Positions 405-20,439 are shown, counted from the stretch's first letter. The stretch: DNA of 34,372 bases from Octopus sinensis (GCF_006345805.1 NW_021831707.1:1-34372), one strand, 5' to 3'. Program-made: numbers and translations. Notes: a model not told the origin generated them from the sequence alone.

Positions 405-950
405 GTATTACATAATTTGTGTTGGCAATTAAGAATAAAGTAGCTTCGTTCATTAAAACAGTTGCTGCATTGCATAACAGATAAGACTTCTGCGATGCAG
501 AGATCGCATTGTTGGCGTGAGTAATAAAAGTCCACTTTAAACTGTATACAGCTGAATTATGTTTTAGGTAATGAATGAGACTAGATATAAATATAGTATT
601 AGTTTACACTTGAGATTTAAAGCCAGAATAATGGTTACTAATTCTGGCTTTGAAGGTAGTGCTGCTCGAGGTGATATATGCATTCTTGGAATCTTCCGTA
701 GTGGCCATATACTTATGTACCATATTTCTCGTGAGGCATTTGTTTTGCAAGGGAGAGGAGTTTACAGTTACATAGTCTTCTAGGGGGTACTAAGTGGAGT
801 TTTTGGGTTATAATTACCTGAAATTAACCGGGCGTTATATTTAGTATTAGCCTCAGCGTTAGGATTGGTATTGTTTGTGGTGCAGTGGGAGTAGTCCGGG
901 GGATGGAGATTATCAATGAGCACTCTCAATTTGCGCATCTATTACACATA
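405..950 (-). mobile_element. Decayed Penelope-like element (PLE) fragment, GIY-YIG endonuclease region, copy A
   Basis: Minus-strand translation across stops and frameshifts gives CNCK..PLQNKCLTRNMV..ATTEDSKNAYI..STTFKARISNH..LKW..THA..CDLCIAE..NERS..CQHKL, the typical PLE endonuclease end. Homologous to 16945-17520. Confidence 0.8.
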
Positions 951-1099
951 AACATACAATGAACTACTTACAATGTAAGTTCCTAGTTTCAGCAGGAATG
1001 CCTCAAAAAAAAAAAAAAGTTTCCGAGATAACAGAATGTGTAACGAAATGTGTACAATGGAAAATGAAACGTCAATAAAACAAAATTATGCAGAATACA

Positions 1100-1130
1100 T
1101 TTAATTTTAAAGACTGAACTTTCTTTTAAT
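1100..1130 (-). terminator. Candidate polyadenylation signals (two ATTAAA) of CCP gene copy 1
   Basis: tttaat at 1100-1105 and 1125-1130 reads ATTAAA on the minus strand, ~220-245 nt after the stop. Both are conserved in copy 2 (~17667-17700). No transcript evidence. Confidence 0.4.
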
Positions 1131-1346
1131 TATAGAATTGTTTCCAGTTAGTTATGCAAATACCAAGAGAGAAAACACCCTAAGAAAGTTCTTGGAAATA
1201 AATTTAGGAATGTTTCTAATTACATCGTCATAGCTATGCAGATAAGATGTGGAATATGCTTCTTTAAATTTAACTCATATACACAGAAACAATAATTTGT
1301 GCATAAAGGGGACAGTTTCAAAGGGAGAGTAGTTTGATATTAGTAA

Positions 1347-2834
1347 TTATCGGTAATTTTCACACCTCAAAGTACAACAACTTGCATGGGTTTCCTTAAA
1401 AGGTATTTCCGATGTTGTAGTGTTAAAATTCACAACGACACACTTATGTCGGTAATTACAGTTTCTATAGTCACAAGTGTACTGGCGGTAACCAAAAAAT
1501 TTGCAATCAATGTTTGTTCCGCAAACATAGTAATCTGATGAAATATTCTTGTAAAGAAGATTGTTGTTACGATCAAGTCGAATATTTTTAAATGCACAGC
1601 CTGGTGTTGGGGTCAGTATACCTTTATGGCACATTACGCTCTCGTTCAATTTCTTCGAATTTGGGAATTCACAAGAATAAGTAATGTTCGTATTTTCTGG
1701 AACTGTACTGCCATACGGAAGATATTTCAAAGTTTTCGAATTTCGGTAGCTATATATGCCAAATTTTCGCAACAATTGACAGTTCTTTGCACACTGTGGA
1801 AGTTTTCCACTCCATGTTCCATTTTCTAAACAGGTTCTTTTTGAATCTCCCAACAATGTTTCTCCAACTGGACAACTATATTCAATAACCGAAAAATTAC
1901 GTGACAAAATAAAATTTAACCCATTTCGTTTCTCAATTTTACACGCGTTTCTGCACTGTATATCTGGATACCATTTACTTGACAAGCATTGAACGACACC
2001 AAACGCGACAGGAATGAAAGATCGTTTGCAAGAATATATGACTTTTCCTCCATCGTTGATTAAGGTTCTTGGTTTTAATATTGTACCTTCAGAAATAGTC
2101 ACCACTCTACCAGCAATTTCAGGTACAAAGCAATTCAAAGTACAAACAGGTGCCGGAAAGTTCCAGCTGCCGTCTGAAAGACAAGTTAATACAGATTCAC
2201 CTTTCAGACTATATGGCTTTAAGCAACTGAAATGAATTGTTTCGTTAACTTTAACTTCATTTGTATTGTTTACATTGCCATGTTTGGGTGGGTTCGGTGG
2301 GAGACATTTAACAATTTCACAGATTGGTGGGAGAGACGACCACTGTTTATTTTCTTGACAACGTATTGAATTGTTTCCTCGTAAAAAATAACCAGACAGG
2401 CAGGAAAAACGAATAACAGAGTTATATGAGTATGCAACATTTATCATGAAACTGCGTGCATGTTTATGAAAAATCGGGCAAGTTATTAACTTACATTTTT
2501 TATCTTCATACATCCATTTACCATTCGAACAAATAATATCGGCTGTATTCTCTACGCTTGCTTCAAAATAGCGGTTGCACTTTTGTTTCAGATGTATTTT
2601 TGCCTCTTCCCATTTCACAATATAATGTATCCGACTGTTCTTTAATGTCGGTAAAGGACCACAGTTTAGGATATTTATAATTTGTTCAAAAAACCACGGA
2701 GCATAGTTGTTTTCGGTTGAAGTCGAATTACTGTATTCAGATACGATCTTTTTCATAACATTTCCAAATGTATTATTTTCACTCTTCACTGTTAATATAA
2801 TTAAGAAAAGGAAATAAAATTTTCTGGATATCAT
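1347..2834 (-). CDS. Secreted multi-Sushi/CCP glycoprotein (495 aa), single exon, copy 1; Hig/LEV-9-like modules plus Cys-rich C-terminal domain
   Basis: Uninterrupted ORF with a hydrophobic N-terminus (MISRKFYFLFLIILTVKS). About six CCP modules (C58-C114 divergent, C119-C172, C177-C231, C235-C294, C298-C348, C352-C413) with F/Y-x-C and C..W..P-x-C motifs. About 10 N-glycosylation sequons, no TM segment, intact paralogue at 17917-19401. Confidence 0.93.
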   Translation of the reverse strand: MISRKFYFLFLIILTVKSENNTFGNVMKKIVSEYSNSTSTENNYAPWFFEQIINILNCGPLPTLKNSRIHYIVKWEEAKIHLKQKCNRYFEASVENTADIICSNGKWMYEDKKCKLITCPIFHKHARSFMINVAYSYNSVIRFSCLSGYFLRGNNSIRCQENKQWSSLPPICEIVKCLPPNPPKHGNVNNTNEVKVNETIHFSCLKPYSLKGESVLTCLSDGSWNFPAPVCTLNCFVPEIAGRVVTISEGTILKPRTLINDGGKVIYSCKRSFIPVAFGVVQCLSSKWYPDIQCRNACKIEKRNGLNFILSRNFSVIEYSCPVGETLLGDSKRTCLENGTWSGKLPQCAKNCQLLRKFGIYSYRNSKTLKYLPYGSTVPENTNITYSCEFPNSKKLNESVMCHKGILTPTPGCAFKNIRLDRNNNLLYKNISSDYYVCGTNIDCKFFGYRQYTCDYRNCNYRHKCVVVNFNTTTSEIPFKETHASCCTLRCENYR

Positions 2835-2927
2835 TCTCTCAATTTTGTTGCTAAACTTGTTCGTGAAGATAAGGTCGCTGTGTTCACACTTGTTATTTCG
2901 TTGCCTTCAGTGACTGTTCAATGCACC

Positions 2928-2934
2928 TTTTATA
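2928..2934 (-). promoter_or_regulatory. TATA box (TATAAAA) of CCP gene copy 1
   Basis: TTATCTCGAGTATAAAAGG, 94 nt upstream of the ATG; identical in copy 2 while the adjacent sequence has diverged. Confidence 0.65.
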
Positions 2935-3189
2935 CTCGAGATAACACACCCAGGAGCGTATAAGTAGTACTGATAAAAACTTACTTATATTTACTTTTTT
3001 GAATTTGACACCGTTTTAATTGAATGAATAAGGATACTCCCATATACACCTCTTTTAGAGAGTACAGAATATTATGTCCAGACTAAATATCAAACTGAGT
3101 ACATTGCAAGCACAAATTACAAACTATGAAAAACGATAACATTATATTAAATAAATTTTATTGTTGATACTTTGTATAATTTCATATAC

Positions 3190-3234
<45 letters not shown>

Positions 3235-3382
3235 TACTGCATAGAATGCTGTATATGTGTGTATGTATGTATGTATGTATGTATGTATGTATGTATGTAT
3301 GTATGTATGTATGTATGTATGCATGCATGTATGTATGTATGTATGCCAAATGCATGCATATGTAGATAGAAAGATAGATAGA
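3190..3382. repeat. (TA)n, (TATG)n and (GATA)n microsatellite block
   Basis: Directly visible; a homologous, longer block lies upstream of copy 2. Confidence 0.95.
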
Positions 3383-4254
3383 TCGCTTGCATCATTACAA
3401 GTCAAGTTTTAATACAGTGCACACTTTTGTAATGTTCGTGTAGGCAATGTTTTCCTCCCACTCATTAATATTTCAATTGAAAACAAAGAAAAACTGACAA
3501 GCGTTACACAGTACATAAAACAGCAAAATTATTTGAAAGTACTTCACATACTCTGCATAAATTATAAAATTTAAAGAAATTACCTTTAATTGTAATTTTT
3601 GAGGCTGAAACTAACTGTTTCTATTTTCATAAGGAAAATACAAAAGAATCATGTTTCAGTGATTTGTGGGTCAGTTTTTTCCAATTTAGTGACAAAATAA
3701 TTTGTTGTCCTAAAAGCTGGTTCAACAAAATACGTGGTAGAAAAAGGCAGCTGTAAAATGGATATAAATTCCCACGTATTTGGATATTAAACGGGTATTT
3801 AAAAAAAAAAAATCTCCATAAATTTCGGTATCTACCACAACGAAGTTCCATTGGCTTTTTTTCGTATTTAAATTCTAAACTTTTTTTCCGGGTATAAGCA
3901 TCAACCTCGACAACATTTACATTAAAAAGATACCTTTTCCAGTCACATCTTCAAGTTCAAAATATCGCTAAATCGGTTTCCTGTATCTCATAAACGATTA
4001 TTGAACTTTTCAATCTCTTATGGAATTACACCTTGTTTAATGGATCACAATTTTGCGAACTGATGGAATTCCTTCTTCCCAATATTAGGCATAAAATATA
4101 AAGATTTTCGATGAACAATGACATTACATTTTATACAACTCATAAGATGTTGTATTGGCTCCTTGGAGCTAGAAACGAATTTCATTAAATCTCGTGAAAA
4201 TGCCCGTCAATTGTAAAGCATCAAGCTTTATTGGGAAGAAATCTCAAACGCCTT

Positions 4255-4456
4255 GTGGTTCATTTGGAGTAAAAGAAAATGCAGAAGGATCAGTTAATTA
4301 TGATTTTATTCAACATATTCCCCTCTCAGATTCGCACACTTATTGCAGTCACCTTTCAGGTTTTTTAAACCCTGTAAAAGAACTCGGAATACTGGGCCAT
4401 CAACCAGGCTTTCACAATATCCTTAAAGCCGGGAACTTTTCAGCACGCCCATCATA
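4255..4456 (-). mobile_element. Mariner-derived MITE
   Basis: Minus strand starts tatgatgggcgtgctgaaaagttcccggcttt (mariner-type TIR) and contains the transposase 3' end (CNKCANLRGEYVE*). The other TIR is degenerate. Confidence 0.7.
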
Positions 4457-4497
4457 GAGTACAACTTTATTAACATTAGAGTACAACTTTATTAACA
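4455..4497. repeat. 22-bp tandem duplication (tagagtacaactttattaaca x2)
   Basis: Exact 21-nt copies at 4455-4475 and 4477-4497, next to the MITE end. Confidence 0.85.
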
Positions 4498-4779
4498 ATA
4501 AGAATTATGGCTATAAATATAATCAAGTCGAATGTTTACAAATGACGGTGTTACGACAGCTCAGCAATTTACTAGATTGCTGGTGCACAGAAGTTCGTTG
4601 GCTGTTATAAAGGTGCATGTTTGTTTCGTTGCCTTAAATGTTTCGTTGAATTAAATGACAATATCGAAGGATGTTTTTCTAATTAATGTTTGATTCTATG
4701 GAAAATCAAAGATCAATAAAATACAGCCACTAAAGGGTATACTAAAAAAAAAAGGCACACATTCTTATGAAACTTTGTC

Positions 4780-5155
4780 GCTTGTTTCAGTCATTAGACT
4801 GCGTCGACTCCAGTACCTATATTTTCAAGCCTGGCGCTTATCCTATCGGCCTACACATCGCAGAACAGCGAAGTTTCGGAGAAGTAAACAAGCGAACATC
4901 AGCTATCAAACTGAGTGGGGAACTGTTACAAAGACGAAGACATACACACGCACTTACGCGACGCGCACGCACTCTCTCTCGCTCTCTCTCCCCCCCACAC
5001 ACACATCACGGGTTTCTACGAAATCCATTCACAAGACCCTGGCCGGCCTAGGCCTACAGTAGAAGACACTTGCCTAACGTGCCATGCAGTGGAACTGAGC
5101 CTACAGCTATATGGTTGGAAAGCAAACATCTTACCACTCAGTCACACCTGCACCT
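4780..5155 (-). mobile_element. tRNA-derived SINE, older diverged copy of the family at 15335-15737
   Basis: Reverse complement shows the head aggtgcaggtgtgactgagtggtaag, an internal microsatellite and the tail aatgactgaaacaag. Confidence 0.8.
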
Positions 5156-5224
5156 ACCATGACAGGAATGGCACAAGTCCGCCAACATAAGAATTTCAAT
5201 AGAGCTTAGATCTAACAAAACATA

Positions 5225-6425
5225 TATGAAGGTCGGTTGAAAAGTCCCCAGGCTAATCAAGATACTCTCATGGAATTTGACTAAATGAGGTTTATTTCAT
5301 TTCTTTCATCGGCGTTGTAGTGTTTGAATCTTATTATTGAAGAAGCTTTCATCCTGTGGGTCAAAAAATTATCAAGAGCAGATGTGACGTCATCGTCACT
5401 GCGATACTGTTTCCAGCCAAGTATTTTTATGATGTTGGGGACATGATAGTCAAGTGGTATCAAACCACTAGAATAGGGACGGTGATCAACCAGTTCACAG
5501 CCACTCTACTCACAGCAGCCATTGAAACCAATGACTTGTGTGCTGGGGCATTGCCCTGATAAAACAAAACCCCTTTCATCAGTTTTCATCGGCATTTAGT
5601 CTTGATTGCCTTTTGCAACTGCTTCAGATAGTTGGCATATTTCTCTCCACTGATGACGTGGCTTTTTTGAAGATAGTCAACGAACACAATGCCTTTTGCA
5701 ACCCAAAAGACTGAGGTCGTCACCTTCCCTGCAGATGAAACGACCGTGGTCCTCTTTAGAGAAGATGAGGATGGGTGTTTCCACAGCATGGATTGTTTCT
5801 TTGTCCCTGGCTCAAAGTGATGAAACCAACATTCATCCTGGCTAAGAAAACGTTCAAGGAAACCAGCTGAATCTGTCTGAAAGAGTGACAGATTTTTCTG
5901 TGATGTCGACAGCCTGGTGCGCTTTTGATCAGGTGTCAAAAGACATGGAGTCCACCGAGCAGATACCTTCGTCATGCCACATTCATTGTGTAGAATAACT
6001 CCCACGGTATACGCTTTTAGAATTGGTTATTTGATTGATAGTCAATCATATGCCATCCATCACCATGTGGTGAACATGACCAACGTTTTCTTCGGTGGTA
6101 GTAGTTGCAAGACGTAAAGACCTTGGGTGATCTTTAAAACCCTCCATTCCTCGCCTAAATTCACCTATCTGCTTTTGCACCGTTGATGAAGATGGAGCGT
6201 CATCCCTTAATATAGCAAGCATGGCAGCATGAATGTACCTGAGTGACTAAACACGTTTTCTGCTGGTACTTGATAACAGTGTTCTTTGATCTGTCAGATT
6301 TCAATTTACGTGTAAAGAAATAATGCAGATTTTAATAAGAATAACTGAAATTAATGCATGCAAGATTTCACAGTTATGGCATAGCTCATTTATAGTCAAC
6401 CTATGAGCTTTTTGCCCACTCTCTT
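5225..6425 (-). mobile_element. Decayed Tc1/mariner (DD34D-type) transposon
   Basis: ORF 5586-6005 has KVSARWTPCLL, SQDECWFHHFEP and VFW; next frame has FYQGNAPAH and RPYSSGLIPLDYH (degenerate HPPYSPDLAPSDY). Degenerate TIRs at ~5225-5258 and ~6392-6425; ~1.2 kb; contains stops and frameshifts. Confidence 0.88.
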
Positions 6426-7244
6426 GGGTCAACATTATTATATGTTACCGAGGTTTGCTCTGTTTTAAACGATAGCCCTATGTTTATGCACATGTCTCTA
6501 TCCTCTAATCTTCCAACGGTGTTCATTAGTGACTATTTATCAGCAATGATATAGATTGTTGCTACCACAAAAAGAAAAGAAAAAAGAAAAGAAAAAGAAA
6601 AAATTTAATTGTAAATTTACTTTTATAGAAAGTATATAATACTTACGGAGTTCAGTCACGAAAAGTTTGAAATATGGAACGGTATAGGACATCTTGGGAT
6701 GAAATCAATAATTTATTTCGTCATACATGAGCACAGACAAAATGTATCGCATGTTGGCATTGTACTTAGCCCTGGCTCTTTTGTACACGCTAATCCTTTC
6801 CCTTTGGTTGTAACCAGGAATTGCATACGGTGGATGATGAGGTGCTGTATGTGTCTTTCCAATTAATGGGTTGCACGTGCAAGGCCCATTCCTCATCACT
6901 CTCACCAGTCTGCTATAGGATATTGAACTTGGCGTTGTCTGCAATAGCTGCGTCTTGTGGACAAGGTGTTTAGAGGGCATGGGTTGGCATAACGGGAATG
7001 AAGGATCTGGGACCTTACTATTTTTAGTTGGCAGTTTGAAACCGGTAGTTCGAGCGCTTGCTAGGGTAGTCTATTGTTACTTTATTACTCTGGTGAATGG
7101 AGTTAGCTACTTCCTGGATGCTCTTCATAGTGCTAGATTCTAGTTGACCGACATTGCCGATTTGCAGCATAAATTCATAAACTTATGTATACATACATAC
7201 ACACAGACACATACACGCGCGCGCGCACGTACACACACACACAC

Positions 7245-7284
<40 letters not shown>

Positions 7285-7296
7285 ACACATATATAT

Positions 7297-8055
7297 ATCG
7301 ACCGCCACGCATCCTTTTCCAAGGAAGTTTCATCTTAATAATTACGATGCTCACTCTTCTATCTTTACTATCTCTTCTCTGTCTATCTTTCTCCCTCTCT
7401 TGTTCTTCATCCTTTCTGGTTTTCTCTCCCACCCTTCTTTATTCTTCTCCTCTCCTCTTCACCGTCCCCTCTCTCTCACTCCTCCTCCTCGACTCTCTCG
7501 TCGCTAACACGTGACGAAAGAGAATCTATCTTTTTGCCTACTACCTTTCGTAAAGACAAAACGTGCTTATACTGCCTCCTTCATAAGCTCGTCTTCCTAG
7601 CGTTCATAATAATTTTCTATCGTCTTGGCTTAACGTTTGTTTTTACTGTTTTGTTCTCACAGTCCTGTTCTTGTTACCACATTCACCCCCACGCAAAAAA
7701 TCCCAAATTTTATTTAATTGCTTTGCAGGAAGGACTGTTTCAACGAAGTCACGTATTGTCATTGCCTTCGAACGTGGAGTAGATGGAACAGGGACAACTG
7801 AAAAAGGGAATATTCTTATGTTGCATGTCTCGTGTCTCTGTCTTTTTCGTTGTTCGAAAAAAATGTTCGTTTCTATGTTTTTGTTTTCATGTTTTCGTTT
7901 CTAATTGTGTTCAACGTGTTTTGTGTCCTGTACCCATATATGCATGTATATAACATATATATATATATAAGTAGTACATATATGTATGTATAATGCATAT
8001 ATTTATATATTATTGATATTATTATATGATCGAACGCCACGCATCCTTTTCCAAG
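7297..8055. repeat. Segment bounded by a 27-bp direct repeat (probable retroelement terminal-repeat remnant)
   Basis: atcga(c/a)cgccacgcatccttttccaag at 7297-7323 and 8029-8055. Confidence 0.5.
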
Positions 8056-8056
8056 T

Positions 8057-8088
<32 letters not shown>

Positions 8089-8468
8089 CTAGCAGTATCG
8101 CCCGGCGTTGCTCAGGTTGTAAGGGAATAAACTATAAAGCATTTTTAGAGAGGTATAGCCAAAAAATAGCATAGCAAAAGAATGGAAAAAAAATTATGGT
8201 AAATTCTTTTTGAGAGTTAAAAAAGGTGGAGTTGCGGCCCCTAGACGGTCTGTGGTTTGGGCTTCTGTCTCGACCCCATGTCGAATTTATCGATTTTTTT
8301 CAGAACTGGGGGAACTTTTCAAAATTTTCGCTGCGTTAGTTTTGAATTATGACATTGGGCTATGTGTGTGTCAAGGTTTCATCAGAATCGGTTGAAAGCC
8401 GTGGTCAGAGTGAGGGTACGAGAAACAGACCACACAGAGAAAACGCACAGACAAAACTGCCGGTTTAT

Positions 8469-8480
<12 letters not shown>
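8089..8480 (-). mobile_element. Non-autonomous Helitron-like element
   Basis: Minus-strand 3' end has a GC hairpin (8101-8116) followed by CTAG (8089-8092), inserted in (TA)n; 5' end lost in a TA-rich tract. Confidence 0.6.
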
Positions 8481-8510
<30 letters not shown>

Positions 8511-8610
8511 ATATCCCTTCCTCCTGAGCGTCCAAAATACTATATTGTTCCACGTCCTCGCGTTGTTGTGTTTATTTTGTGTTTTCATGTTTGGATTAAC
8601 TATATATATA

Positions 8611-8644
8611 TATATATATATATACATATATAATAATAATAATG

Positions 8645-8675
<31 letters not shown>

Positions 8676-9182
8676 CAAACAACAGCAACAATAATAATAA
8701 TAAATGTAAATCCGAATTTCTGTGTGTCAGTGTGTCACACTTTGAGCCCCTCTCTCACTATTCAGTGACATTTCTACTATTCCGCGTGATGAGGTGAGAG
8801 TAATAGTAGGCATACAGACGGTAGTAGATTAATGGTTGTGATGGCAATAGGGTGATAATAATAGTATGAGCTGTAGTTGTGATAGAGGTGGAGGTGACAG
8901 CGCTGATGGTGGTCGCAGTGGTAGCCGAGGCGTTCAGGGATGACAGTGATAGTAAGTGATGTAAAAGACAGTGGTGATGGTGGTGGAGGGGAAGACGGCG
9001 AAGTCGAAGGTATTGATGGAGGTGGCGTCAGAAGTCTGAATTTGTGTGTGTGTGTGTGGCAGTTGTGGTGGCGATGGTGGTGGTACTGGTGATGGTGATT
9101 GCTGAAAACAACCAACAGAAAGCGAGAGAGAGATGGAGAGAGGGAGAGAGAGAGGAGAGAGAGAGGGAGAGAGATGAGAGAG

Positions 9183-9215
<33 letters not shown>
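8611..9215. repeat. Low-complexity stretch: (TA)n, (AAT)n/(AAC)n, (GGT)-rich, (GA)n
   Basis: Directly visible; source of spurious His/Pro/Glu-Arg ORFs. Confidence 0.85.
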
Positions 9216-9216
<1 letters not shown>

Positions 9217-9557
9217 AAGAGGTTAGACAGAAAAAAATTGTACTGACGCCTGAGTGGGAGGACAAAAAATGTTATTTATCGTGCAGCTTTGCAATAAGTT
9301 ACAAATCGACAAATTATATCATTATTTTGATGAAAATTGTTCATTGCTTGAAAAATATTAGTTAAGTCTAAAACAATTTAATATGTACTCAATGAATGAA
9401 ACTCAATAAAATCTATCTATTTGTTGGAGTCTAACAATTTATTGTGTTCTCTGAAATTTTGTTCTCTTTTTTATTAATCTTTATATTTCACCTTGCTCTA
9501 TCCACTAGTGCACTAATATGATGTTCTGTACTGGGAGTTATACTCCTTTCTATTTGA

Positions 9558-9639
<82 letters not shown>

Positions 9640-9649
9640 CACGCACACA

Positions 9650-10092
9650 TTCTTTTATTCTTTTATTTGTTTCAGTCATTTGAATGCGGCCGTACTGGAG
9701 TACCACCTTTAGTTGAACAAATCGACCCCAGGACTTATTCTTTGTAAGCCTTGTACTTATTCTATCGCTCTCTTTGCCGAACTGCAAGTTACGGGGACGT
9801 AAACACACCAACATCGGTTGTCAAGCGATGGTGGGAAGACAAACATAGGCACAAACATATACACACACATACATACACACATACACACACACACACACAC
9901 GCACATACATACATACACACACATATACATACGGCAGTCTTTCAGTTTCTGTTTACCGAATCAACTCACAAGGCCTTTGTCGGCCCGAGGTTATAGCAGA
10001 AGACACTTGCCCAAAGTGCCACGCAGTGGGACTGAACCTGGAGCCATGTGGTTGGTAAGGATGTTACTTACCACACACCCACTCCTGCGCTT
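9650..10092 (-). mobile_element. tRNA-derived SINE
   Basis: Reverse complement closely matches 15335-15737 (head, gcaagtgtcttctgctata core, internal microsatellite, tail). Confidence 0.9.
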
Positions 10093-10237
10093 GTATATAC
10101 ATACAACACACACACACACACACATACACATATATATATATTCACAAACATGTATATAATATATATTCATACATACATACATACATACATACATACATAC
10201 ATACATACATAGTTGAAATTTATCGAAAAACAAAAGA

Positions 10238-11102
10238 CTAAGACAGGTGTGTATGAACAACAAGCAAGGGTATTAGTTTGACGCTCGAGAAAGAATGAAA
10301 AAGTCTTTTACGTTTCGAGCCTTTGCTTTCCAACGAAACGGAATAAGAGAAAATAAGCAGGGAGAGGGTCGAACATAGCGATGACTGGAAAAAAATGCAT
10401 TGAAAGAAAGGGATAGAGTAAAGTGCTAGTGATCCCAACAAGAGAAGGTGCACATGCATGTGTGTGTGTGAGAATGGTGTATGTGTGTTTGTGTGTGTGT
10501 TTGTGTTGTGTGTAGCAGTTGATGTGTGCCTTTTCACGTGGTGTGTGCACATGTGTATGTGTGTCTGTGACCAGTGTGCATGTATGTGGGTGAAAGTTAT
10601 CTTTGTCTGTATGTTGCGTGTGTAAATGCGTGTTGCGTGTGTATGTATGTATAGTCTGTGTTCAGGTGTTTGTTTATGTGGATGTGGGAGTGTGCATGAT
10701 GGTGTGCGTTGTGTGTGTACTGAGTTAAAGAGTGTATATGGCTTCTCGTATAGTGGAGTGTGTGGTGGCGTTATTGAATATTGTGTGTCGGTGTGTGGAT
10801 GATGGTGTGTGTTGTAGGTGCTAAGTGGTCACTGCTAATGTGTGTGGAATGGTGTAGTTTTTGTATCAAATGAAGAGAGGAGGTGAGGTGGTGTCAGATG
10901 AAGCGAGGAGGTGAGTTGAGCCTATATGATGGAAAGGAGCGAAGAGAGAAGATTAATTCTTGTTCACGGCGAAGGCGGGAGTCCAGATATCCCCCGTACA
11001 AAGACAATCCAAACACAGACAGATGCTAGAGCGAATGACCGGTTGAGCGGAAATGGCGCGTGACTGGGGAGACATTGCCGAGTTTGACCGATGTACAGGG
11101 AA
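10238..11102 (-). mobile_element. PLE 3' part (end of GIY-YIG endonuclease, 3'UTR/pLTR with degenerate hammerhead)
   Basis: Minus strand reads SLYIGQTR..PVTRHFRSTGHSL*..RLRREQELIFSLRSFPSYRLNSPPRFI*; continuous with 12663-14100 across the RTE insertion. Confidence 0.8.
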
Positions 11103-12662
11103 AAATCGATGTCCTGAAAAATCTCCGGAACAACAAGGCCCCGGGTGAGGACGGTGTCCCAACTGAGATCTACAAGGCTGAGCCTGATGTCTTCGCAGCC
11201 AGGCTTCATCGTGTCTTATGTGCTGTGTGGGCGACGGAGCGTTTTTCTTCCTGATGACTGGAGCGAGGCAACTTTTTTACCTTTCTGTAAAAAAGGTGAT
11301 AGAAAGCTGTGTTCCAACTATAGAGGCATCAGCTTGATCGATGTAGCTGCCAAAACCTTTGCAATCCTTCTTTTGAAGAGGTTCCAGGCCATACGTGATG
11401 TCCGTACTCGTCCTTCACAGGGCGGCTTCCGTCCCGGGAGAGGGTGCGTTGATCAAATATTCAGTCTCCGGCGAGTCCTGGAACAGCGGTGGGTGCACCA
11501 ACAACCTACCGTTCTCTGCTTCATCGATTTTGCGGCTGCCTTCGACTCGGTGGATCGGGAGGCCCTCTGGCGTATTATGCAGGCGGACGGTATCCATGTG
11601 AAGCTGCTAAACCTCGTACAGGGCTACCATCGTTCAACGAGGGCTCGTGTGAGGGTCTATGTTGGGGAGACGGAGTCGTTTGATGTCACTACCAGTGTTC
11701 GATAGGGTTGTGCGCTCTCGCCAACCCTATTCAATTACGCCATCTCAACACTGCGCTTCGGGACTACCCGGGTGTAGAGGCTAGGAGAGGAGTCGTGGTA
11801 ACGGACCTGGCCTACACAGATGACATCGCGCTCTTGGGCTCTAACCGGGCGGATGTCCAAGATGCTCTCAAAAGGGTGCATGTGGCAGCGGCAGCTGTTG
11901 GTCTTCGGATCAATGCTGGCAAAACCAAAGTGATGACGTCTCTGGTCGCAGCAGATGAATGGCAGCCAATCGTTCTCCAGGGCGTGGAGCTGGAGGATGT
12001 GGAGTCCTTTGTCTACTTGGGTTCAACGGTGGTTTCAAAGAGCCAGGGCGCAGCCGAGGTCGAGCGTCGCATAGGTGCTGCCAGATTCGCATTCGTGCGC
12101 CTCCAGCGGTGCCTGTGGGACAGAAGAGAGATCTCCTCGGTAATCAAATGGCGAATCTATCAGGCCGTCGTTCGTACTATCCTCCTCTATGGTTGTGAAA
12201 CATGACCTATGAGGGTAGTTGATCATCGAAGGCGTTCGACAATGACTGTCTCTGCTGCATTCTTCGCTGCCGACGCATTGAACGGGTTCCTACAGCCGGT
12301 CTTCGCCATCGCCCCTCCCTTCGGTGCTTTTACAATGGCGCTTAAGAGGGTTCGGTCATGCGGCCCGTGTCCAGAGGGTGAGCTGATTCGCGATGTCCTC
12401 CTCCTACCTCCACTTCCCAGCTGGCGCAAACGTACGGGCGGGTAGCTGAAGATCTGGGAAACGACGATAAAGGAAGACCTCTCTGAACTCTCCGGTCTGC
12501 AGGTGGTGGGTCTGCGCAGATGGAGCTGCGAATGGCTTGCTATCTCCAGTGACCTTGCACAGGACCGTCGAGCGTGGGCCGCCATGGTTCGTGATGCCGT
12601 TAGGACCAGAGAAGAAGCCGGCTCAAACCGCCCTGGGTGAACGCCGTCACAAGTACAAGTTA
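11103..12662 (+). mobile_element. 5'-truncated RTE-clade LINE (RT fragment) nested in a PLE, 10-bp TSD gtacagggaa
   Basis: NNKAPGEDG, NYRGISL, QGGFRPGRGCVDQIF, FIDFAAAFDSV, LAYTDDIALL, LLYGCET motifs, with stops and frameshifts. Tail caagtacaagt. TSD at 11093-11102 and 12663-12672. Confidence 0.92.
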
Positions 12663-14100
12663 GTACAGGGAAGAACAGAAAGAGCGAGATACAGTAAATG
12701 ACATGACTAGAAGCGCAGATAAAGGAGTCGGTGATGTGATAGGGACGATGATAGGTGCCTGTGAGGATGGTGGTGTTGCAGAAGTAGGGGTAGGCTGGAC
12801 AGCGTGGGTGGGTGCAGTGGAACGAGCCAGGCTGCGAAGTGGGGGTTGGGAAGAAACTGTAGACCAGGATGGTGGTGTTGCAGAGGTAGGGGCAGGCTGG
12901 ATGTCACTCAGGATATGGGCTCGTTCGAAAGAGGGAAGAAGATTCGGGAAGATGTGCGAGGTGTAGGTGTCCGACAGGAGTCGCCAGAAGGCTCGTAGAA
13001 TGATGCATTGGAGGTGCAGGGCGGAAAGGTGGTAGGTGAGGGGAAACGGAAGACGAGCAACGGCGGGGCAGGTGTGAGGCGAAAGAGCTGAGGCACGGTC
13101 CACAGATCGTGCCCTGAAAAGGTCAGTGTGGATAGTGGTCAGGGGATATCCACTTAGGACGAAGTGGCGAGCCATGCGTTGAGACTGAGTCTCAAAGTCA
13201 TGGTTGTCACTGCAGAGCCTGCGCAGACAGGGGAATTAGGAGTAGGGGATGGAGAACTTGGTGTGGGTAGGGTGGGAGGAGGAGAAGTTAAGGTAGGAGT
13301 GTGAGTCAGTGTGTTTATAGTGGATTGAGGTAGTGAGATCGGAGTGGTATATGCTGAGAGAAATGTCGAGAAATTCGATTGAAGAGTTAGAGATAGTGCA
13401 GGGGAATTGGAGGTTAGGATGGAAGGATTGGACAAAAGAGAGGAAGGAACCTAGTTGTTCGCGCCGATACTGGTCATCATGTGAGGTCGCTCCGATACAG
13501 TCATCGCTATAACGACCGTAGTATTCGGGAGCGGGACCAGTGAATTGTGAGAATATTTGGGCCTCAACGTAGCCAACGAAGAGGTTCGCATACTTGGGGT
13601 CCATTCTTGCTCCCATGACCCATCTCGAGACCTGTTGGTAAAAATCCCCCGCGAATGAGAAGCAGTTGAGGGAGAGGAGAAGATCAGTCAGACGAAGAAG
13701 TGTGGAGGTGTCAGGTTGAGAGTCAGGTCGAAGATCTAGAAAGGGTCTGAGCGCAAGAAGTCCTTCGTTGTGCGGGATCACCGTATATAAACTCTTGATA
13801 TCAAGAGTAAATAGAAATTTAAAGGGGCTAGAAGGGAAGGAGAAAGAGTTAAAGAGACAGATAGCATGGCTGGTGTCGTGCACCTGGGAGAGGAGGGAAG
13901 TCACTAGGAGGACAAAGACACAGTTGAGGTATTTGGAGATCATTTCTATGGAGCAGTTGCAGGTGGAGACGATGGGGTGGCCAGAGTTGTTGGGCTTGTG
14001 AATGTTGCGAAGGAAGTAAATAGTGGGAGTGCACGGAATACGGACAATGAGGTTAGATGTGGTGGGAGGGAGACGGGAGGAGGAAATGTGGTCATGAATA
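12663..14100 (-). mobile_element. PLE 5'-truncated body: RT and start of GIY-YIG
   Basis: ORF 13236-14141 has NIHKPNNSGHPIVS, TLDIKSLYTVIP, FSFAGDFYQQ..MG..P.YANLF and RYSDD (degenerate RYIDD). Downstream frames give DSFICASSHVIYCIS..SLY. Confidence 0.9.
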
Positions 14101-14415
14101 GTATATACAAACAACATAAGCGAACCCATATACTCACACAATCACACACAATAACTTTACAGACGGCCGCAACAATATCAACAGCATGACTAACTACTTA
14201 GTGCATATAAGTAGTCTCTATCATTATATATAGTTTAGACTTTAATTTCCTTTATATTTAACATTCACTATTAATATCCCTACTCTTTCTGTTAGCTACT
14301 TATGACGTTATATCATATAACGTTTTTTTAAAACAATATTAATAGCGTTCTGTCTATCGCTATACGAATCCATCATTTTTTGCTAAAATGTCGTATTGAC
14401 AAGTTTCGTTTTTTC

Positions 14416-14502
14416 ACTTTCCTGAAGAGAAGATTGCATTGTTTATACCTTTTATTCTTTTGAATAAGTATCAGTGGAATTTTTGAAACATATGTAGAAA
14501 GT
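14416..14502 (+). ncRNA. Type I hammerhead ribozyme motif (PLE-type)
   Basis: Stem I ACTTTC/GAAAGT; core CTGAAGA (14422-14428); wobble-rich stem II GAAGA/TTTTT; GAAA (14485-14488); palindromic stem III ACATATGT; GTA cleavage triplet (14494-14496). Confidence 0.7.
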
Positions 14503-14708
14503 AAAAATACTTGTTTAAACCTGCGTTAACTCCATTTTTTATTCATATTATTCAAATATTCAACGTAAATACGAAGTTTCAACCTTTATAAACAAGGAGT
14601 TACAACATCTTTACTTGTGGGATTTTGCTGCCCTGGTAACTATTCATTCATTTATCCGTGTTAATTGTTAACAAGGTAAAATACACTCATCTATTTATAT
14701 ATATATAT

Positions 14709-15043
14709 AGGTGCAGGAGTGGGTGTGTGTTAAGTAGCTTGCTAACCAACCACATGGTTATGGGTTCAGTCCCACTGCGTGGCATCTTGTGAGTGGATTT
14801 GGTAGACGGAAACTGAAAGAAGCCTGTCGTATATATGTATATATATATGTGTGTGTATGTGTTTGTGTGTCTATCTTTGCTTGACAACCGATGCTGGTGT
14901 GTTTACGTCCCCGTCACTTAGCAAAAGAGACCGATAGAATAAGTACTGGGCTTACAAAGAATAAGTCCCGGGGTCGATTTACTCGACTAAAGGCGGTGCT
15001 CCAGCATGGCCGCAGTCAAATGACTGAAACAAGTAAAAGAGTA
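14709..15043 (+). mobile_element. tRNA-derived SINE with internal deletion
   Basis: Matches 15335-15737 but lacks the segment between two cttg motifs (ggcatcttg|tgagtgg). Confidence 0.9.
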
Positions 15044-15334
15044 TATATATATATATATACATACATATATTCGCACACAAATTCGGAGAGTGGAGCCGAT
15101 AAAGTCTAGGCTACAAATGTCTTTTAGCTTGCAGATCTGATGTAATCATTTCTCAAAGAGGGGTATTCAGCTCGCTACTCAGCAGACCGAAGATACCTTA
15201 ATTATAAGAAAATTACATTGTCGTTAAGTAATCCCAACTTATCTCTCCGAAAATATAATTTGAAATGAGAGGTGAAGCCGGAAGAACAGAGTAATCCACC
15301 CACAAACCAAAAAAAAAAAAAAAAATCCAGATAT

Positions 15335-15737
15335 AGGCTCGGGATTGGCTGTGTGGTAAGTTGCTTGGTAACCAACCACATGGTTCCGGGTTCAGTCCCA
15401 CTGCGTGGCATCTTGGGCAAGTGTCTTCTGCTATAGCCTCGGGCCGACCAATGCCTTGTGAGTGGATTTGGCAGACGGAAACTGAAAGAAGCCTGTCGTA
15501 TATATGTATATATATGTATGTATGTGTGTTTGTGTGTCTGTGTTTGCATGACAACCGATGCTGGTGTGTTTACGTCCCTGTCACTTAGCGGTTCGGCAAA
15601 AAGAGACCGATAGAATAAGTACTGGGCTTACAAAAACAATAAGTCCCGGGGTCGAGTTGCTCGACTAAAGGCGGTGCTCCAGCATGGCCGCAGTTAAATG
15701 ACTGAAACAAGTAAAAGAGTAAAAAGAGTAAAGAGTA
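15335..15737 (+). mobile_element. Full-length tRNA-derived SINE (abundant octopus-type family)
   Basis: A box TGGCTGTGTGG (15346-15356), B-box-like GGTTCAGTCCC (15389-15399), internal (TA/TG) microsatellite, (AAAGAGT)n tail; three other near-complete copies in the window. Confidence 0.9.
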
Positions 15738-16944
15738 TAAAACAGGAAGAAATGTTTGAAGAAATAAGAGGGCTAGTAAGTAAGAAAAGTGAAGGAAGAG
15801 GTTAAAAATTTGTGAGTGGGGAATTGTCGAAAGTTGTTAGAGAAGAAAGATAATGAGAGGCGAGCGGAGAGGTGGGGTGATTTAGTGTAGATTTAGTGTA
15901 GACGGATGCTGACTTTAGTGAAACACTTAAACCCTTTATAAATCCTATCATCTGACCATGATCAACCGTAACATAAAAAATTAAATTATACAACCCTCCT
16001 TTAAATACCATCATTACAACTTAGAACAACAAATATAACCTATATATATATAGAAATGTATAATATAATCTCACTAATCAAATTAATAAATGGAGGAGCT
16101 CCCATATAACAAATACATAATAAAAATATTAATAAACTCATTATAAGATTATAATTAATTATCCCTCCACATAAAAATAATCTTCGACTATTAATTTTTT
16201 TCATAAAACTTATATAAACTTAGATGTGTTTCGACCAATGATTGGTCCAGGCCATGTCTAACTTAATAGCACCACCTGATGGTGCTATTAATTACATTTC
16301 CTAAACAAAATAAACCTGAAGAACATAACCCATAACAAACCGTCATCAAAATAGCCCCTTCTCAACCAATAATAAATCCCCTAGTTAGTAGGGGTAATTA
16401 GGGGTAATTTGAGAATATTAAGCTAAGGCCACTTTACTGTGTCTCCAGTAAATAGATACTTTGGCGCACCCACGCGTAAACGTTTGTGCACAAACATTTT
16501 TTAGAAGAGATGAAATGGTCAAGAATAAGAAAAAAAGGAAAGGAAGAAGTCAAAGAATTAAGAGTGGGTATTGAATGGAGTTGTTAGGAAAGGGTGGAAA
16601 AAGAGGGAGATAAGAGTTGAAGGCTGTATTCTTTAAAGGGGAGCATAGTTCACGTGGTTAAAGTTGATCGCTTACTACTTCAGGCATATGCACACCCGCA
16701 CGCTTATGCGTACACTCACAGAGTGCCCATAGGATCAGCTTTGGTAAACATGCGCGCGTACGCGCATGCTTATTACCACATGTATAAAGGAAGCTATAAA
16801 GATCTAACAATGTTAAGGAAATGTATGAAAATAGCTTTAAAAAGTATATGTTATAAATACTTTGAAGAAATTCAAGTGACGCTGATGTAGGAGGATTGGT
16901 AGGGAATTATAGGGGAAGGAAGAATTATTTGTAACTTCAGAAGG

Positions 16945-17520
16945 TATTACATAATTTGTGTCGGCCATTCAGGATAAAGTAGCTTCGTTCATTGAAACAG
17001 TTGTTGCATTGCATAACAGATAAGACTTCTGCGATGCAGAGATCGCATTTGTTGCTATAACCGTTTTACGGTTTGGCATGAGTAACAATGGATCATATTA
17101 AACTGTATACAACTGCATTAATTTTTAAGTTATGACTGAGCCTAGATAAAGAGGTAGTATTAGTTTTCGCTTGAAATTTAAAGCCAGAATAATAGTTACT
17201 AATTCTGGCCTTGAAGGTGGTGGTACTAGTTCTGATATATACTTACTTGGAATCATCCGTGGTGACCACATACATTTGTACTGCATTTCTTGTGAGGCAT
17301 TTGATTTTTAAGGAACAGGAGATGGAGCATTTACAGCTGCAATGACTTCTAGAGGATAGTAAAGTGGGGTTTGTGGGGTTATGATTATCTGAGTTTAACC
17401 AGGAGTAATATTTAGTATTAGCCTCAGCGTTAGGGTTGGTATTGTTTGTAGTGCAGTGGAAGCAGTCCGAGGGGGGGGGATATTATCAGTGAGCACTGTC
17501 AATTTGTGCATCTATTACAC
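16945..17520 (-). mobile_element. Decayed PLE GIY-YIG fragment, copy B
   Basis: KCLTRNAV..TTDDSK*VYI..TTFKARISN..THAKP*NGYSNKCDLCIAE..NERS..RHKL; same position relative to the CCP gene as copy A. Confidence 0.8.
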
Positions 17521-17916
17521 ATGAACACGTTGTGAACTACTTACTAAATAAGTTCTTAGTTTCAGGAATGTCTCCCGAAAAAACACTTGTCGAGATAATA
17601 GAATGTGTAAAAAAATGTGCGTAATGGAAAAAGAAACGTTAATAGAAGCAAAATCAAAGAGAATACATTTAATTTTAAAGACTGAACTTTCTTTTAATTA
17701 TAGAATTGTTTCCAGTTAGTTATGCAAATACCAAGAGAGAAAACACCCTAAGAAAGTTCTTGGAAATAAATTTAGGAATGTTTCTATTACATCGTCATAG
17801 CTATGCAGATAAGATGTGGAATATGCTTCTTTAAATTTAACTCATATACACAGAAACAATAATTTGTGCTTAAAGGGGACAGTTTCAAAGGGAGAGTAGT
17901 TTGATATTAGTAATTA

Positions 17917-19401
17917 TCAGTAATTATTACACCTCAAAGTACAACATCTTGCATGGGTTTCCTTAAAATGTATTTCCGATGTTGTAGTGTTAAAATTCAC
18001 AACGACATGCTTACGTCGGTAATTATAGTTTGTATAGTCACAAGTGTACTGGCGGTAACCAAAAAATTTGCAATCAATGTTTGTGCTGCAAACATAGAAA
18101 TCTGATGAAATATTCTTGTAAAGAAGATAGTAGTTACGATCAAGTCGAATATTTTTAAATGCACAGCGTGGTGTTGGGGTTAGTATACCTTTATGGCACA
18201 TTACGCTCTCGTTCAATTTCTTCGAATTAGGGAATTCACAAGAATAAGTAATGTTCGTATTTTCTGGAACTGTACTGCCATACGGAAGATATTTCAAAGT
18301 TTTCGAATTTCGGTAGCTATATATGCCAAATTTTCGCAACAATTGACAGTTCTTTGCACACTGTGGAAGTTTTCCACTCCATGTTCCATTTTCTAAACAG
18401 GTTCTTTTTGAATCTCCCAACAATGTTTCTCCAACTGGACAACTATATTCAATAACCGAAAAATTACGTGACAAAATAAAATTTAACCCATTTCGTTTCT
18501 CAATTTTACACGCGTTTCTGCACTGTATATCTGGATACCATTTACTTGACAAGCATTGAACGACACCAAACGCGATAGGAATGAAGGATCGTTTGCAAGA
18601 ATATATGACTTTTCCTCCTTCGTTGATTAAGGTTCTTGGTTTTAATATTGTACCTTCAGAAATAGTCACCACTCTGCCAGCAATTTCAGGTACAAAGCAA
18701 TTCAAAGTACAAACAGGTGCTGGAAAGTTCCAGCTACTGTCTTGAAGACAAGTTAATACAGATTCACCTTTCAGACTATAAGGTTTCGAGCAACTGAAAT
18801 GAATTGTTTCGTTAATTTCAACTTCATTTGTATTGTTTATACGGCCATGTTTTGGTGGGTTCGGTGGGAGACATTTAATAGTTTCACAAACTGGGGGTGG
18901 AGACGACCACTGTTTATTTTCTTGACAACGTATTGAATTGCTTCCTCGTAAAAAATAATCAGACAGGCAGGAAAAGTGAACAACCGAATTATATGTGTAT
19001 GCAACATTTATCATGAAACTGTTTGCAGGTTTATGAAAAATGGGACAGGTTATCAACTTACATTTTTTATCTTCATACATCCATTTATCATTCCAACAAA
19101 TAATATCGGCTGTATTCTCTACGCTTGCTTCAAAATAGCGGTTGCACTTTTGTTGCAGGTGTATTTTTTCCTCTTCCCATTTCAAAGTATATTGTATTCG
19201 ACTGTTATTCAATTTCGGTAAAGGACCACAGTTTAAGAGTTTTATCATTTGTTCAGAAAACCACGGAGCATAGTTATTCTTGGTTGAAGTCGAATTACTG
19301 TAATCAGATACGATCTTTTTCATAACATTTCCAAATGTATTATTTTCACTCTTCACTGTTAATATAATTAAGAAAAGGAAATAAAATGTTCTGGATATCA
19401 T
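17917..19401 (-). CDS. Secreted multi-Sushi/CCP glycoprotein (494 aa), single exon, copy 2
   Basis: Gap-free alignment to copy 1 with 48 amino-acid differences by manual count, one residue shorter (CGA>TGA). All CCP cysteines conserved. Confidence 0.93.
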   Translation of the reverse strand: MISRTFYFLFLIILTVKSENNTFGNVMKKIVSDYSNSTSTKNNYAPWFSEQMIKLLNCGPLPKLNNSRIQYTLKWEEEKIHLQQKCNRYFEASVENTADIICWNDKWMYEDKKCKLITCPIFHKPANSFMINVAYTYNSVVHFSCLSDYFLRGSNSIRCQENKQWSSPPPVCETIKCLPPNPPKHGRINNTNEVEINETIHFSCSKPYSLKGESVLTCLQDSSWNFPAPVCTLNCFVPEIAGRVVTISEGTILKPRTLINEGGKVIYSCKRSFIPIAFGVVQCLSSKWYPDIQCRNACKIEKRNGLNFILSRNFSVIEYSCPVGETLLGDSKRTCLENGTWSGKLPQCAKNCQLLRKFGIYSYRNSKTLKYLPYGSTVPENTNITYSCEFPNSKKLNESVMCHKGILTPTPRCAFKNIRLDRNYYLLYKNISSDFYVCSTNIDCKFFGYRQYTCDYTNYNYRRKHVVVNFNTTTSEIHFKETHARCCTLRCNNY

Positions 19402-19496
19402 TCTCTCAATTTTGTTGCTAAACCTGTTCGTGAAAATAAGTTCACTGTGTTCACACCTGTGAGTTCGTTATGCTTTTTGTGCATACTCAGTGAGCC

Positions 19497-19503
19497 TTTT
19501 ATA
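19497..19503 (-). promoter_or_regulatory. TATA box (TATAAAA) of CCP gene copy 2
   Basis: Same TTATCTCGAGTATAAAAGG context, 96 nt upstream of the ATG. Confidence 0.65.
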
Positions 19504-19759
19504 CTCGAGATAACACAGGTTCCCAGCTACGTATAAGTGGTTCCGAGAAAAACATATTTATATTTTCAGTTTGAATTTGACACCTTTTTGATTGAGAAAA
19601 TAGAGATACACCAACTCTTTTAGAATTTATAGAAATTTATTATGTCCAGACTAAATATCAAACTGTGTACACTATAAGCACAAATTACAAACTATGAAAA
19701 ACGATAACATTATATTAAATAATTTGTATAGTTGATATTTTGTATAATTTCATATACAT

Positions 19760-20432
19760 AATATATATATATACAGTACTGCATAGAATGCTGTATATGT
19801 GTGTATGTATGTATGTATGTATGTATGTATGTATGTATGTATGTATGTATGTATGTATGTATGTATGTATGTATGTGTGTATGTATGTATGTATGTATGT
19901 ATGTATGTATGTATGTATGTATGTATGCATGCATGCATGCATGTATGTATGTATGTATGTATGTATGTATGTATGTATGTATGTATGTATGTATGTGTGC
20001 ATGTACGTACATACTATGTACGTATGTATGTGTGTTGTGTGTGTTGTGTGTGTGTGAGAGAGTTTGTATGTGCGTATGTAAGTATATATGCATGTATGCA
20101 TGTATGTATATGTAAACAGAAAGAAAATTGATAGATAGATAGATATACATAGATATACAAAGAATACTGTATATGTATGCATGCATGTATGTAAGTATGT
20201 ATGTATATATGTATGTATGTATTCCCGTACGCACGTATGTATGTATGTATGTATGTATGTATGTATGTATGTATGTATGTATGTATGTATGTATGTATAT
20301 GTATGTATGTATGCACGCACGTACGTTCGTACGAATGTACGTACGTATGTATGTATGTATGTATGTATGTATGTATGTATGTATGTATGTATGTATGTAT
20401 TTATGTGTATGTATGTATGTATGTAGGTATGT
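19760..20432. repeat. Expanded (TATG)n compound microsatellite
   Basis: Directly visible, ~670 bp; source of HTYI/MYVC pseudo-ORFs. Confidence 0.95.
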
Positions 20433-20439
20433 AGATATA

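Follow-up and report, generated by a model that had tools for sequence, protein, structure and literature searches.

What kind of protein is encoded by two closely similar, intronless genes on one short scaffold of the octopus genome, and what might it be for? The stretch in question, hereafter the window, covers in full the unplaced scaffold VCDQ01000500.1 in the Octopus sinensis assembly GCA_006345805.1 (NW_021831707.1; 34,372 nt, zero runs of N), which carries two copies of a gene for a secreted protein of six complement control protein (CCP, or Sushi) modules followed by a cysteine-rich tail. An earlier note on this DNA had read them as possible scaffolds for nicotinic-type receptors. The reading to which we give a probability a little better than even (about 55%) is that the window proteins are secreted mucus glycoproteins of recognition or defence, composed of a conserved CCP stalk and a diversifying tail. 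To our knowledge, cephalopods have no adaptive immunity, and little has been learned about the recognition molecules that they secrete. As a concrete candidate for recognition or defence at octopus mucosal surfaces, or for chemical signalling by contact, the family combines lineage restriction, intronless genes, tandem expansion, a six-CCP rod, an orphan, diversifying eight-Cys tail and a trace in mucus; should it act as a generic extracellular-matrix glue, the interest would be modest. What appears to be new is the joining of a conserved CCP body to an orphan tail, with fast evolution specific to that tail.

In Pfam, Sushi/CCP (PF00084) was the only family above threshold, with 108.6 and 94.4 bits for copies 1 and 2 against a cut-off of 20.7, and by cysteine position the protein resolves into six four-Cys modules (residues 58-114, 119-172, 177-231, 235-294, 298-348 and 352-413). 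The modules thus belong to PF00084, a family folding as beta-sandwiches like beads on a string, by Cys pattern as well as by gathering threshold; the conserved CCP tryptophan is present in five of the six and missing from CCP6. The N-terminus MISRKFYFLFLIILTVKS (copy variant MISRKFYFLFLIILTVKS/ENN) reads as a predicted signal peptide, no 19-residue window of transmembrane-grade hydrophobicity occurs in either copy, and each copy has 11 N-x-S/T sequons. WAP and immunoglobulin (Ig) domains were absent from the window proteins in a Pfam scan at E up to 1, which returned HRM, LCE and F54D1_6_C below threshold. The description of the pair in the earlier note, as intact paralogues that are secreted and consist of about six CCPs and a Cys-rich tail but lack a transmembrane segment, is borne out by open reading frames (ORFs), Pfam, Cys spacing and hydrophobicity. 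An AF2 model built on an 11-sequence family alignment (mean predicted local distance difference test, pLDDT, 77) has a helical N-terminus, six beta-sandwich modules and a beta-rich tail, with pLDDT values of 70-89 in the CCP modules (residues 58-413) and 57-68 in the tail. Foldseek searches with the whole model retrieved factor H, CR2 and beta-2-glycoprotein I (beta-2-GPI) at E = 1e-20 to 1e-16, that is, generic CCP strings, and these whole-model matches are uninformative on the tail. The tail itself, of about 80 residues, found nothing meaningful in Pfam at E up to 10 or in a PDB profile search; an eight-Cys framework and an FFGY-type motif are kept across the family, all eight Cys being conserved in every member but copy 2.

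The two genes lie head to tail in direct orientation, separated by 15.1 kb (Table 1). Their products align without gaps at 90% identity, the coding sequences (CDS) are 94.6% identical at the nucleotide level, and the ORF of copy 2 stops one codon before that of copy 1. Each gene sits in a duplicated unit of about 2.95 kb; units A and B share 88.8% identity with indels by self-BLAST, and the flanks of the two copies share 84-85% in flank alignments. A haplotig, or one locus assembled twice, was rejected, given 5.4% CDS and about 15% flank divergence, the indels and the single gap-free scaffold; the window copies are true paralogues. The coding region is uninterrupted in both copies and in every relative whose DNA was read: the gene span equals 3 x (aa + 1) in the window copies and in those of loci L002-L005, L007 and L010, and locus L006 contains a continuous 491-codon ORF, so that the intronless structure first proposed for the pair extends to all relatives examined and characterises the family. 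Each of the eight aligned octopus paralogue loci has a TATA box (GTATAAAAGG or CTGTAAAAGA) about 95-110 nt before the ATG, and ATTAAA signals occur 217-244 nt 3' of both stops (1100-1105 and 1125-1130 in copy 1, 17668-17673 and 17693-17698 in copy 2), a placement that supports self-contained single-exon genes. A microsatellite delimits the duplication unit, and no poly(A) remnant was noticed there.

Only octopod proteins scored at least 519 bits in a large homology search, the next matches reaching at most 319 bits. In an exhaustive profile search with CCP6 plus tail as query against 1.84 billion protein representatives (141 hits, 139 of them non-family), the matches covering the tail were the family itself and P0041, nothing else. 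P0041 (511 aa, single exon, identical architecture, 36% identity) comes from the ENA assembly ERZ21867824, which contains at least six paralogues, and one more relative was present in the Logan run SRR24189493. The gene calls of both data sets translate TGA as Trp, and the neighbouring "genes" are unreliable. Going by degree of divergence alone, one might guess that this ENA/Logan group represents another cephalopod lineage. So far, the family appears restricted to octopods (Octopus, Argonauta) and this one group; full-length relatives come only from these and in multiple copies, in agreement with the lineage-specific, expanding family previously postulated. As judged from the intact and decayed copies described below, family turnover proceeds by tandem duplication and pseudogenisation, i.e. 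by birth and death. Distant matches P0012-P0018 were rejected as members, being generic multi-CCP proteins without a match to the N-terminus or the tail.

Between the window copies, the ratio of non-synonymous to synonymous divergence (dN/dS or omega; Nei-Gojobori estimates) is 0.36-0.37 in CCP1-3 and 0.13-0.29 in CCP4 and CCP6, CCP5 being identical between copies, and 0.50 for the whole gene. For all closer pairs of the family, omega ranges from 0.2 to 0.6 in the CCP modules and from 1.2 to 6.8 in the tail (1.2-2.5 in the closer octopus pairs). The dS of the window pair drops from 0.18 (codons 1-234) to 0.035 (codons 235-413), and the near-identical tract runs on into the 3' flank with 1 mismatch in 251 nt; it is probably a gene-conversion tract. 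Exchange between the copies is supported by P0169 (XP_029656586), a mosaic of copy 1 and copy 2 with copy 2 residues at positions 261 and 276. The 81-codon tail, inside the tract, has 13.5 non-synonymous versus 0.5 synonymous differences; its dN of 6.9% is higher than the local neutral divergence of 1.3% (Fisher p = 4.6e-4) and higher than the dN of CCP4-6, compared at non-synonymous sites (Fisher p = 1.9e-5). The same distribution of change is seen between the 1:1 orthologues P0007 and P0174, which share 93% identity in CCP1-6 and 70% in the tail, and within the ENA group, with internal identities of 90-93% in CCP1-6 and 24-58% in the tail; CCP4-5 are near-invariant across octopods. These substitution patterns show a CCP body under purifying selection and a tail that evolves at or above the neutral rate among paralogues and orthologues, with its Cys framework kept.

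Table S2 of a skin-mucus proteome of O. vulgaris lists the UniProt entry A0A6P7TXA6, "complement factor H-like" (PMC10138644), whose in-silico tryptic peptides in Table S5 are GESVLTCLSDGSWNFPAPVCTLNCFVPEIAGR and FSCLSGYFLR (PMC10138644). Among all family sequences retrieved, these two peptides co-occur only in window copy 1; from the exact peptide match and by elimination, we infer that A0A6P7TXA6 corresponds to copy 1. The single mucus peptide is weak but direct evidence that a member of the family is secreted at the body surface. The fallback of the earlier note, a secreted gland or immune effector, fits this detection and the diversifying tail.

In the mechanism that we propose, the rigid, conserved CCP string would serve as a stalk or partner-binding rod. 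That CCP4-5 are almost invariant suggests a conserved host partner, to which these modules would bind, and the diversifying, Cys-knotted tail would form a variable ligand-binding head. Release into the skin mucus would then permit extracellular recognition or defence, directed for example at microbial or foreign surfaces.

Several observations weigh against such a role. Modelled alone, the tail has a pLDDT of 44.6 and no usable fold, and the binding head is what we infer. The test of non-synonymous versus synonymous change within the tail is, by itself, borderline (p = 0.045). With 11 outgroup paralogues for polarisation, derived changes in CCP1-3 number 13 and 12 in the two copies, and all four polarisable tail changes, the loss of two invariant Cys (C459Y, C465H) among them, fall on copy 2, which has also lost two invariant Gly (G105D, G222S); part of the tail signal could come from lost constraint in this copy. 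The proteomic identification of A0A6P7TXA6 consists of 1 unique peptide with 1 peptide-spectrum match and 3% coverage (PMC10138644). Moreover, a sample of O. vulgaris was matched to an entry derived from O. sinensis, and the detected peptide is possibly shared by paralogues. As to relaxed constraint, a tail dN above the local neutral rate indicates that relaxation alone is insufficient, and the two Cys of copy 2 disappeared together, so that their number stays even, as expected for the removal of one disulfide and not for random decay. Copy 2, its tail remodelled, has either shifted in function or begun to decay.

Among the other explanations, a conspecific recognition or reproductive protein (acting on gametes, between mates or as a contact cue), its tail diversified by sexual selection or self/non-self signalling, is possible but unlikely. 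Sperm-egg binding does involve CCP proteins that have C-terminal extensions, such as mouse ZP3R/sp56, which supports this alternative. Omega above 1 confined to one domain, tandem lineage-specific expansion and orthologues differing mainly in the tail are typical of such proteins, and a location at the body surface would agree with a contact cue that suckers sense. However, skin mucus is the sole expression trace, and the exhaustive profile, Pfam and PDB searches gave no homology to known gamete-recognition proteins.

We consider it rather improbable that either window copy, or both, is a young duplicate without function, on its way to becoming a pseudogene and intact merely through youth and gene conversion. 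Both ORFs are intact over 494-495 codons despite a dS of 0.18 in the 5' half, omega in the CCP modules is about 0.2-0.4, the TATA boxes are conserved, copy 1 has an identification at the protein level, and the paired loss of Cys fits the removal of one disulfide. These features have to be set against the decayed copies present in the family, the truncation of P0169, the whole-gene omega of 0.50 for the pair and, in copy 2, the missing two invariant Cys and two invariant Gly together with a stop early by one codon.

A glandular effector or toxin precursor, with the CCP body as carrier and the Cys-rich tail as a released hypervariable peptide, on the model of venom peptide families whose precursor is conserved and whose mature region varies, seems quite improbable, since a strongly conserved six-CCP body of 410 residues is implausibly large as a propeptide and no toxin family was matched in Pfam or PDB. 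The fixed Cys framework, the hypervariable loops and the conserved upstream region would agree with such a precursor, as would the R-x-x-R-type motifs before the tail, which read RLDR in the window copies and REPRAR or RDPRVR in several ENA members, but the basic motif is missing from most octopod paralogues.

The proposal of the earlier note, a scaffold resembling Hig, Hasp and LEV-9 that clusters nicotinic-type receptors, e.g. the sucker chemotactile receptors derived from nicotinic acetylcholine receptors, now appears very improbable. LEV-9 consists of eight CCPs and a WAP domain, Hig of five CCPs and an Ig domain, and Hasp of a WAP domain and up to 17 CCPs (PMC9083331); the window proteins have six CCPs and neither WAP nor Ig, and the named non-family matches to CCP6 plus tail include vertebrate factor H, factor H-related (FH-related) and SVEP1-like proteins. 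Ten of the non-family matches to CCP6 plus tail were looked up, and the eight named ones comprise three vertebrate factor H or FH-related proteins, one SVEP1-like protein, a bat Sushi-domain protein, an O. bimaculoides fragment, a Clostridia repeat protein and a spider hypothetical protein. In Pfam scans, a WAP or Hig-type Ig domain was found in none of the 139 non-family matches, among the families listed (25 of 30 for the 12 longest matches); the families that these scans did return include Sushi_2, cEGF, SRCR, CUB, WSC and HRM. PDB sequence and fold searches placed CR1, CR2, factor H, beta-2-GPI and CD46 on top. By this indirect profile-search test the CCPs go with generic complement-regulator and SVEP1 modules, the very outcome that the earlier note had set against its own proposal; Hig, Hasp and LEV-9 are set apart here by published descriptions and by that search rather than by alignment with their own sequences. 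The supposedly Hig-like motif YLPYGSTV..NITYSC looks, by reading of the sequence rather than computed alignment, like the generic CCP core, aromatic-x-x-G-S-x-V-x-Y-x-C, into which a few residues have been inserted. A fast-diversifying, multi-copy birth-and-death family is, moreover, unlike the conserved single-copy synaptic scaffolds. A scaffold function would be consistent with a secreted CCP-only protein, as the clustering function of LEV-9 is carried by its CCPs and not by WAP (PMC9083331), and secretions of the sucker surface could contribute to skin mucus. The minimal R-x-x-R motif between CCP6 and tail (RLDR, residues 419-422) recalls the C-terminal processing of LEV-9, but is not kept across the family.

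The longest shot is that the family is a hypervariable skin-surface label read by the animal's own chemotactile suckers, an idea that is compatible with secretion, detection in skin mucus, lineage restriction and tail-specific diversification, and that retains the link to chemotactile receptors, as ligand rather than scaffold. A so far unidentified skin chemical is reported to block sucker attachment (Nesher et al. 2014, summarised in PMC9339708), and the family could be a candidate for this anti-attachment factor of octopus skin. In a wider variant, it could supply a co-evolving set of protein ligands for the expanded chemotactile receptors, the stalk acting as mucus anchor and the tail conveying the identity of species, individual or paralogue.

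For mucus glycoproteins of recognition or defence, the reading that we prefer, a number of known systems offer comparison. Hig, Hasp and LEV-9 are, like the window proteins, secreted invertebrate proteins dominated by CCPs, and are C-terminally processed (PMC9083331). They are conserved proteins of the synaptic cleft, with Ig (Hig) or WAP (Hasp, LEV-9) and with CCP numbers other than the six of the octopus proteins, and the Pfam and profile searches brought out no specific sequence relationship to them. The vertebrate regulators of complement activation (RCA: factor H, FH-related proteins, CR1/CR2, CD46, CD55) are likewise strings of CCP modules, and the best sequence and fold matches of CCP2-3 were CR1 (E = 1.9e-97 summed), factor H and CD46. 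The RCA genes form tandem clusters with duplication and gene conversion, as does the octopus family, and factor H and its relatives recognise their targets through one end of the rod. Identity is 17-25% and confined to the module level, short of orthology, and the octopus family differs in its non-CCP, eight-Cys tail, in its cephalopod restriction and in being intronless; CCP genes typically have one exon per module. Beta-2-GPI (apolipoprotein H), which ranked high in Foldseek with a target-normalised TM-score of 0.46-0.48, is a secreted, glycosylated, CCP-only protein whose aberrant C-terminal end binds ligand. Sushi_2, the family of its fifth domain, occurs in several of the non-family matches to CCP6 plus tail, whereas the window proteins have no Sushi_2 match, carry the tail as a separate eight-Cys module of about 80 residues, and are multi-copy and diversifying. 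The C4BP alpha chain and ZP3R/sp56 resemble the window proteins in having several CCPs followed by a short Cys-containing C-terminal extension, and ZP3R, which acts in recognition, evolves rapidly. In C4BP, oligomerisation is driven by the tail, a conserved amphipathic helix with 2 Cys, whereas the octopus tail has 8 Cys, is hypervariable and is predicted, at low confidence, to be beta-rich, without a C4BP-type helix. The same logic is seen in the FREPs of snails and the VCBPs of amphioxus, lineage-specific, multi-copy secreted mucosal proteins with conserved and diversifying recognition parts. Their domains are unrelated to those of the octopus family, which is known from sequence and one mucus peptide.

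The members of the family are distributed over several sites in each genome. Three O. bimaculoides members (XP_014781787, XP_014785378, XP_014773178) lie within about 0.3 Mb of CM046603.1 and a fourth, XP_014777951, on a different chromosome. In O. sinensis, XP_029633620, XP_029634395 and XP_036357238 map to CM016861.1 (132.43-132.52 Mb), XP_029638524 to another chromosome, XP_029657165/XP_029657166 to a 41.6-kb scaffold and XP_029656586 to an unplaced scaffold of 58 kb; further copies are mostly on unplaced scaffolds. One O. vulgaris model and two proteins of Argonauta hians complete the set. In a neighbour-joining tree, the window pair and XP_029656586 form a clade of O. sinensis only. Decayed copies (pseudogenes) were found at L006:2635-4014 and L004:5345-6123. 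A second tandem pair on CM016861.1, XP_029634395/XP_029633620 (L002:3505-4992 and L002:10001-11485), is about 5 kb apart and about 99% identical, with a dS of 0.01-0.017, and represents a very recent duplication or an assembly duplication. The MetaClust protein P0008 (376 aa) is a single frame in which a truncated copy ending in CCP4 is joined by a short linker to the following copy, from its start codon through CCP1-3, which indicates very tight head-to-tail packing in some octopus sequence.

Database records obscure these relationships. Members are named complement factor H(-like), P-selectin(-like), SVEP1, CSMD3-like or clotting factor C, borrowed names that are misleading, and at least one model, XP_036357238, is truncated: this 390-aa "complement factor H-like" protein skips CCP2-3 of the intact 491-codon ORF at L006:10001-11476. 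The statement that no described protein has this architecture needs qualifying accordingly, since members are present in RefSeq and UniProt under generic names; a paper characterising the family was not found in the literature. P0169, a truncated 305-aa model ending past CCP4 and near copy 1 in sequence, is either copy 1 itself, as a haplotig or allele with a disruption, or a broken third copy. With copy 1 it has in common seven derived amino-acid changes within 21 residues of CCP1 (residues 63-83, window 2583-2648), where copy 2 retains the family consensus; the cluster may mark another local hotspot of change, or a small patch converted from a paralogue outside the sample. Two distant relatives with a mutual identity of only about 60% have an in-frame TGA right before the first tail Cys (L008:11330-11332 and L009:1353-1355), where P0161 has TGG (Trp). 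In both, the frame stays open for 68-69 codons past the TGA with the Cys framework of the tail intact, and neither a selenocysteine insertion sequence nor unusual local RNA folding was found at these sites. A-to-I editing of UGA to UGG, read-through, or tail-less variants are possible explanations.

Table 1. Features of the two CCP genes and of the sequence around them (positions in the 34,372-nt window)
Feature	Position	Strand	Basis
Copy 1, CDS including stop, 495 aa	1347-2834	minus	ORF, Pfam Sushi, domain coordinates, AF2
Copy 1, predicted signal peptide	2781-2834	minus	sequence reading
Copy 1, N-terminal helical region, ~40 residues	2664-2780	minus	domain coordinates
Copy 1, CCP1	2493-2663	minus	domain coordinates
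Copy 1, CCP2	2319-2480	minus	domain coordinates
Copy 1, CCP3	2142-2306	minus	domain coordinates
Copy 1, CCP4	1953-2132	minus	domain coordinates
Copy 1, CCP5	1791-1943	minus	domain coordinates
Copy 1, CCP6	1596-1781	minus	domain coordinates
Copy 1, tail, 8 Cys	1350-1595	minus	domain coordinates
Copy 1, TATA box GTATAAAAGG, 101 nt 5' of ATG	2926-2935	minus	position conserved across paralogue loci
Copy 1, near-identical tract, codon 235 to ~255 nt past stop	1092-2132	minus	dS drop, 3' flank; ends near ATTAAA
Duplicated unit A: gene, ~940 nt of 3' flank, ~510 nt of 5' flank	405-3345	minus	self-BLAST
Copy 2, CDS including stop, 494 aa	17917-19401	minus	ORF; architecture as copy 1
Copy 2, CCP1-6	18163-19230	minus	domain coordinates
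Copy 2, tail, 6 Cys	17920-18162	minus	domain coordinates
Copy 2, TATA box GTATAAAAGG, 103 nt 5' of ATG	19495-19504	minus	position conserved across paralogue loci
Copy 2, near-identical tract	17663-18699	minus	as for copy 1
Duplicated unit B	16944-19887	minus	self-BLAST, flank alignments
Reverse-transcriptase fragment of dead retroelement, intergenic	11145-12205	plus	split by stop at 11706-11708
(TATG)n microsatellite, 5' edge of unit B	19796-20433	no strand	Tandem Repeats Finder

The region between the copies contains microsatellites and at least one dead retroelement, identified by Pfam RVT_1 matches on two abutting ORFs (E = 7e-13 and 1.5e-07). The (TATG)n microsatellite at the edge of unit B has a counterpart at 3254-3345 that delimits unit A, and the long "ORFs" at 19710-20594 are the translated repeat. 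Apart from the reverse-transcriptase fragment, the remaining long ORFs of the window gave zero Pfam matches. Three of them, at 13236-14141 (minus), 24302-24805 (plus) and 30742-31275 (plus), contain motifs resembling retroelement reverse transcriptase (YSDDCIG) and the endonuclease of long interspersed nuclear elements (VGDFN...); Pfam stayed silent on them even at E up to 10, and they count as putative transposon remnants. The picture of genes amid dead transposons is therefore upheld for the reverse-transcriptase fragment and not for the other long ORFs. Scans of the window for tRNA genes and against Rfam were empty. Window positions 10000-14000 form a GC-rich island (GC 0.48-0.55, as compared to 0.32-0.35 near both genes) with strong positive GC skew, which coincides with the retroelement debris between the copies.

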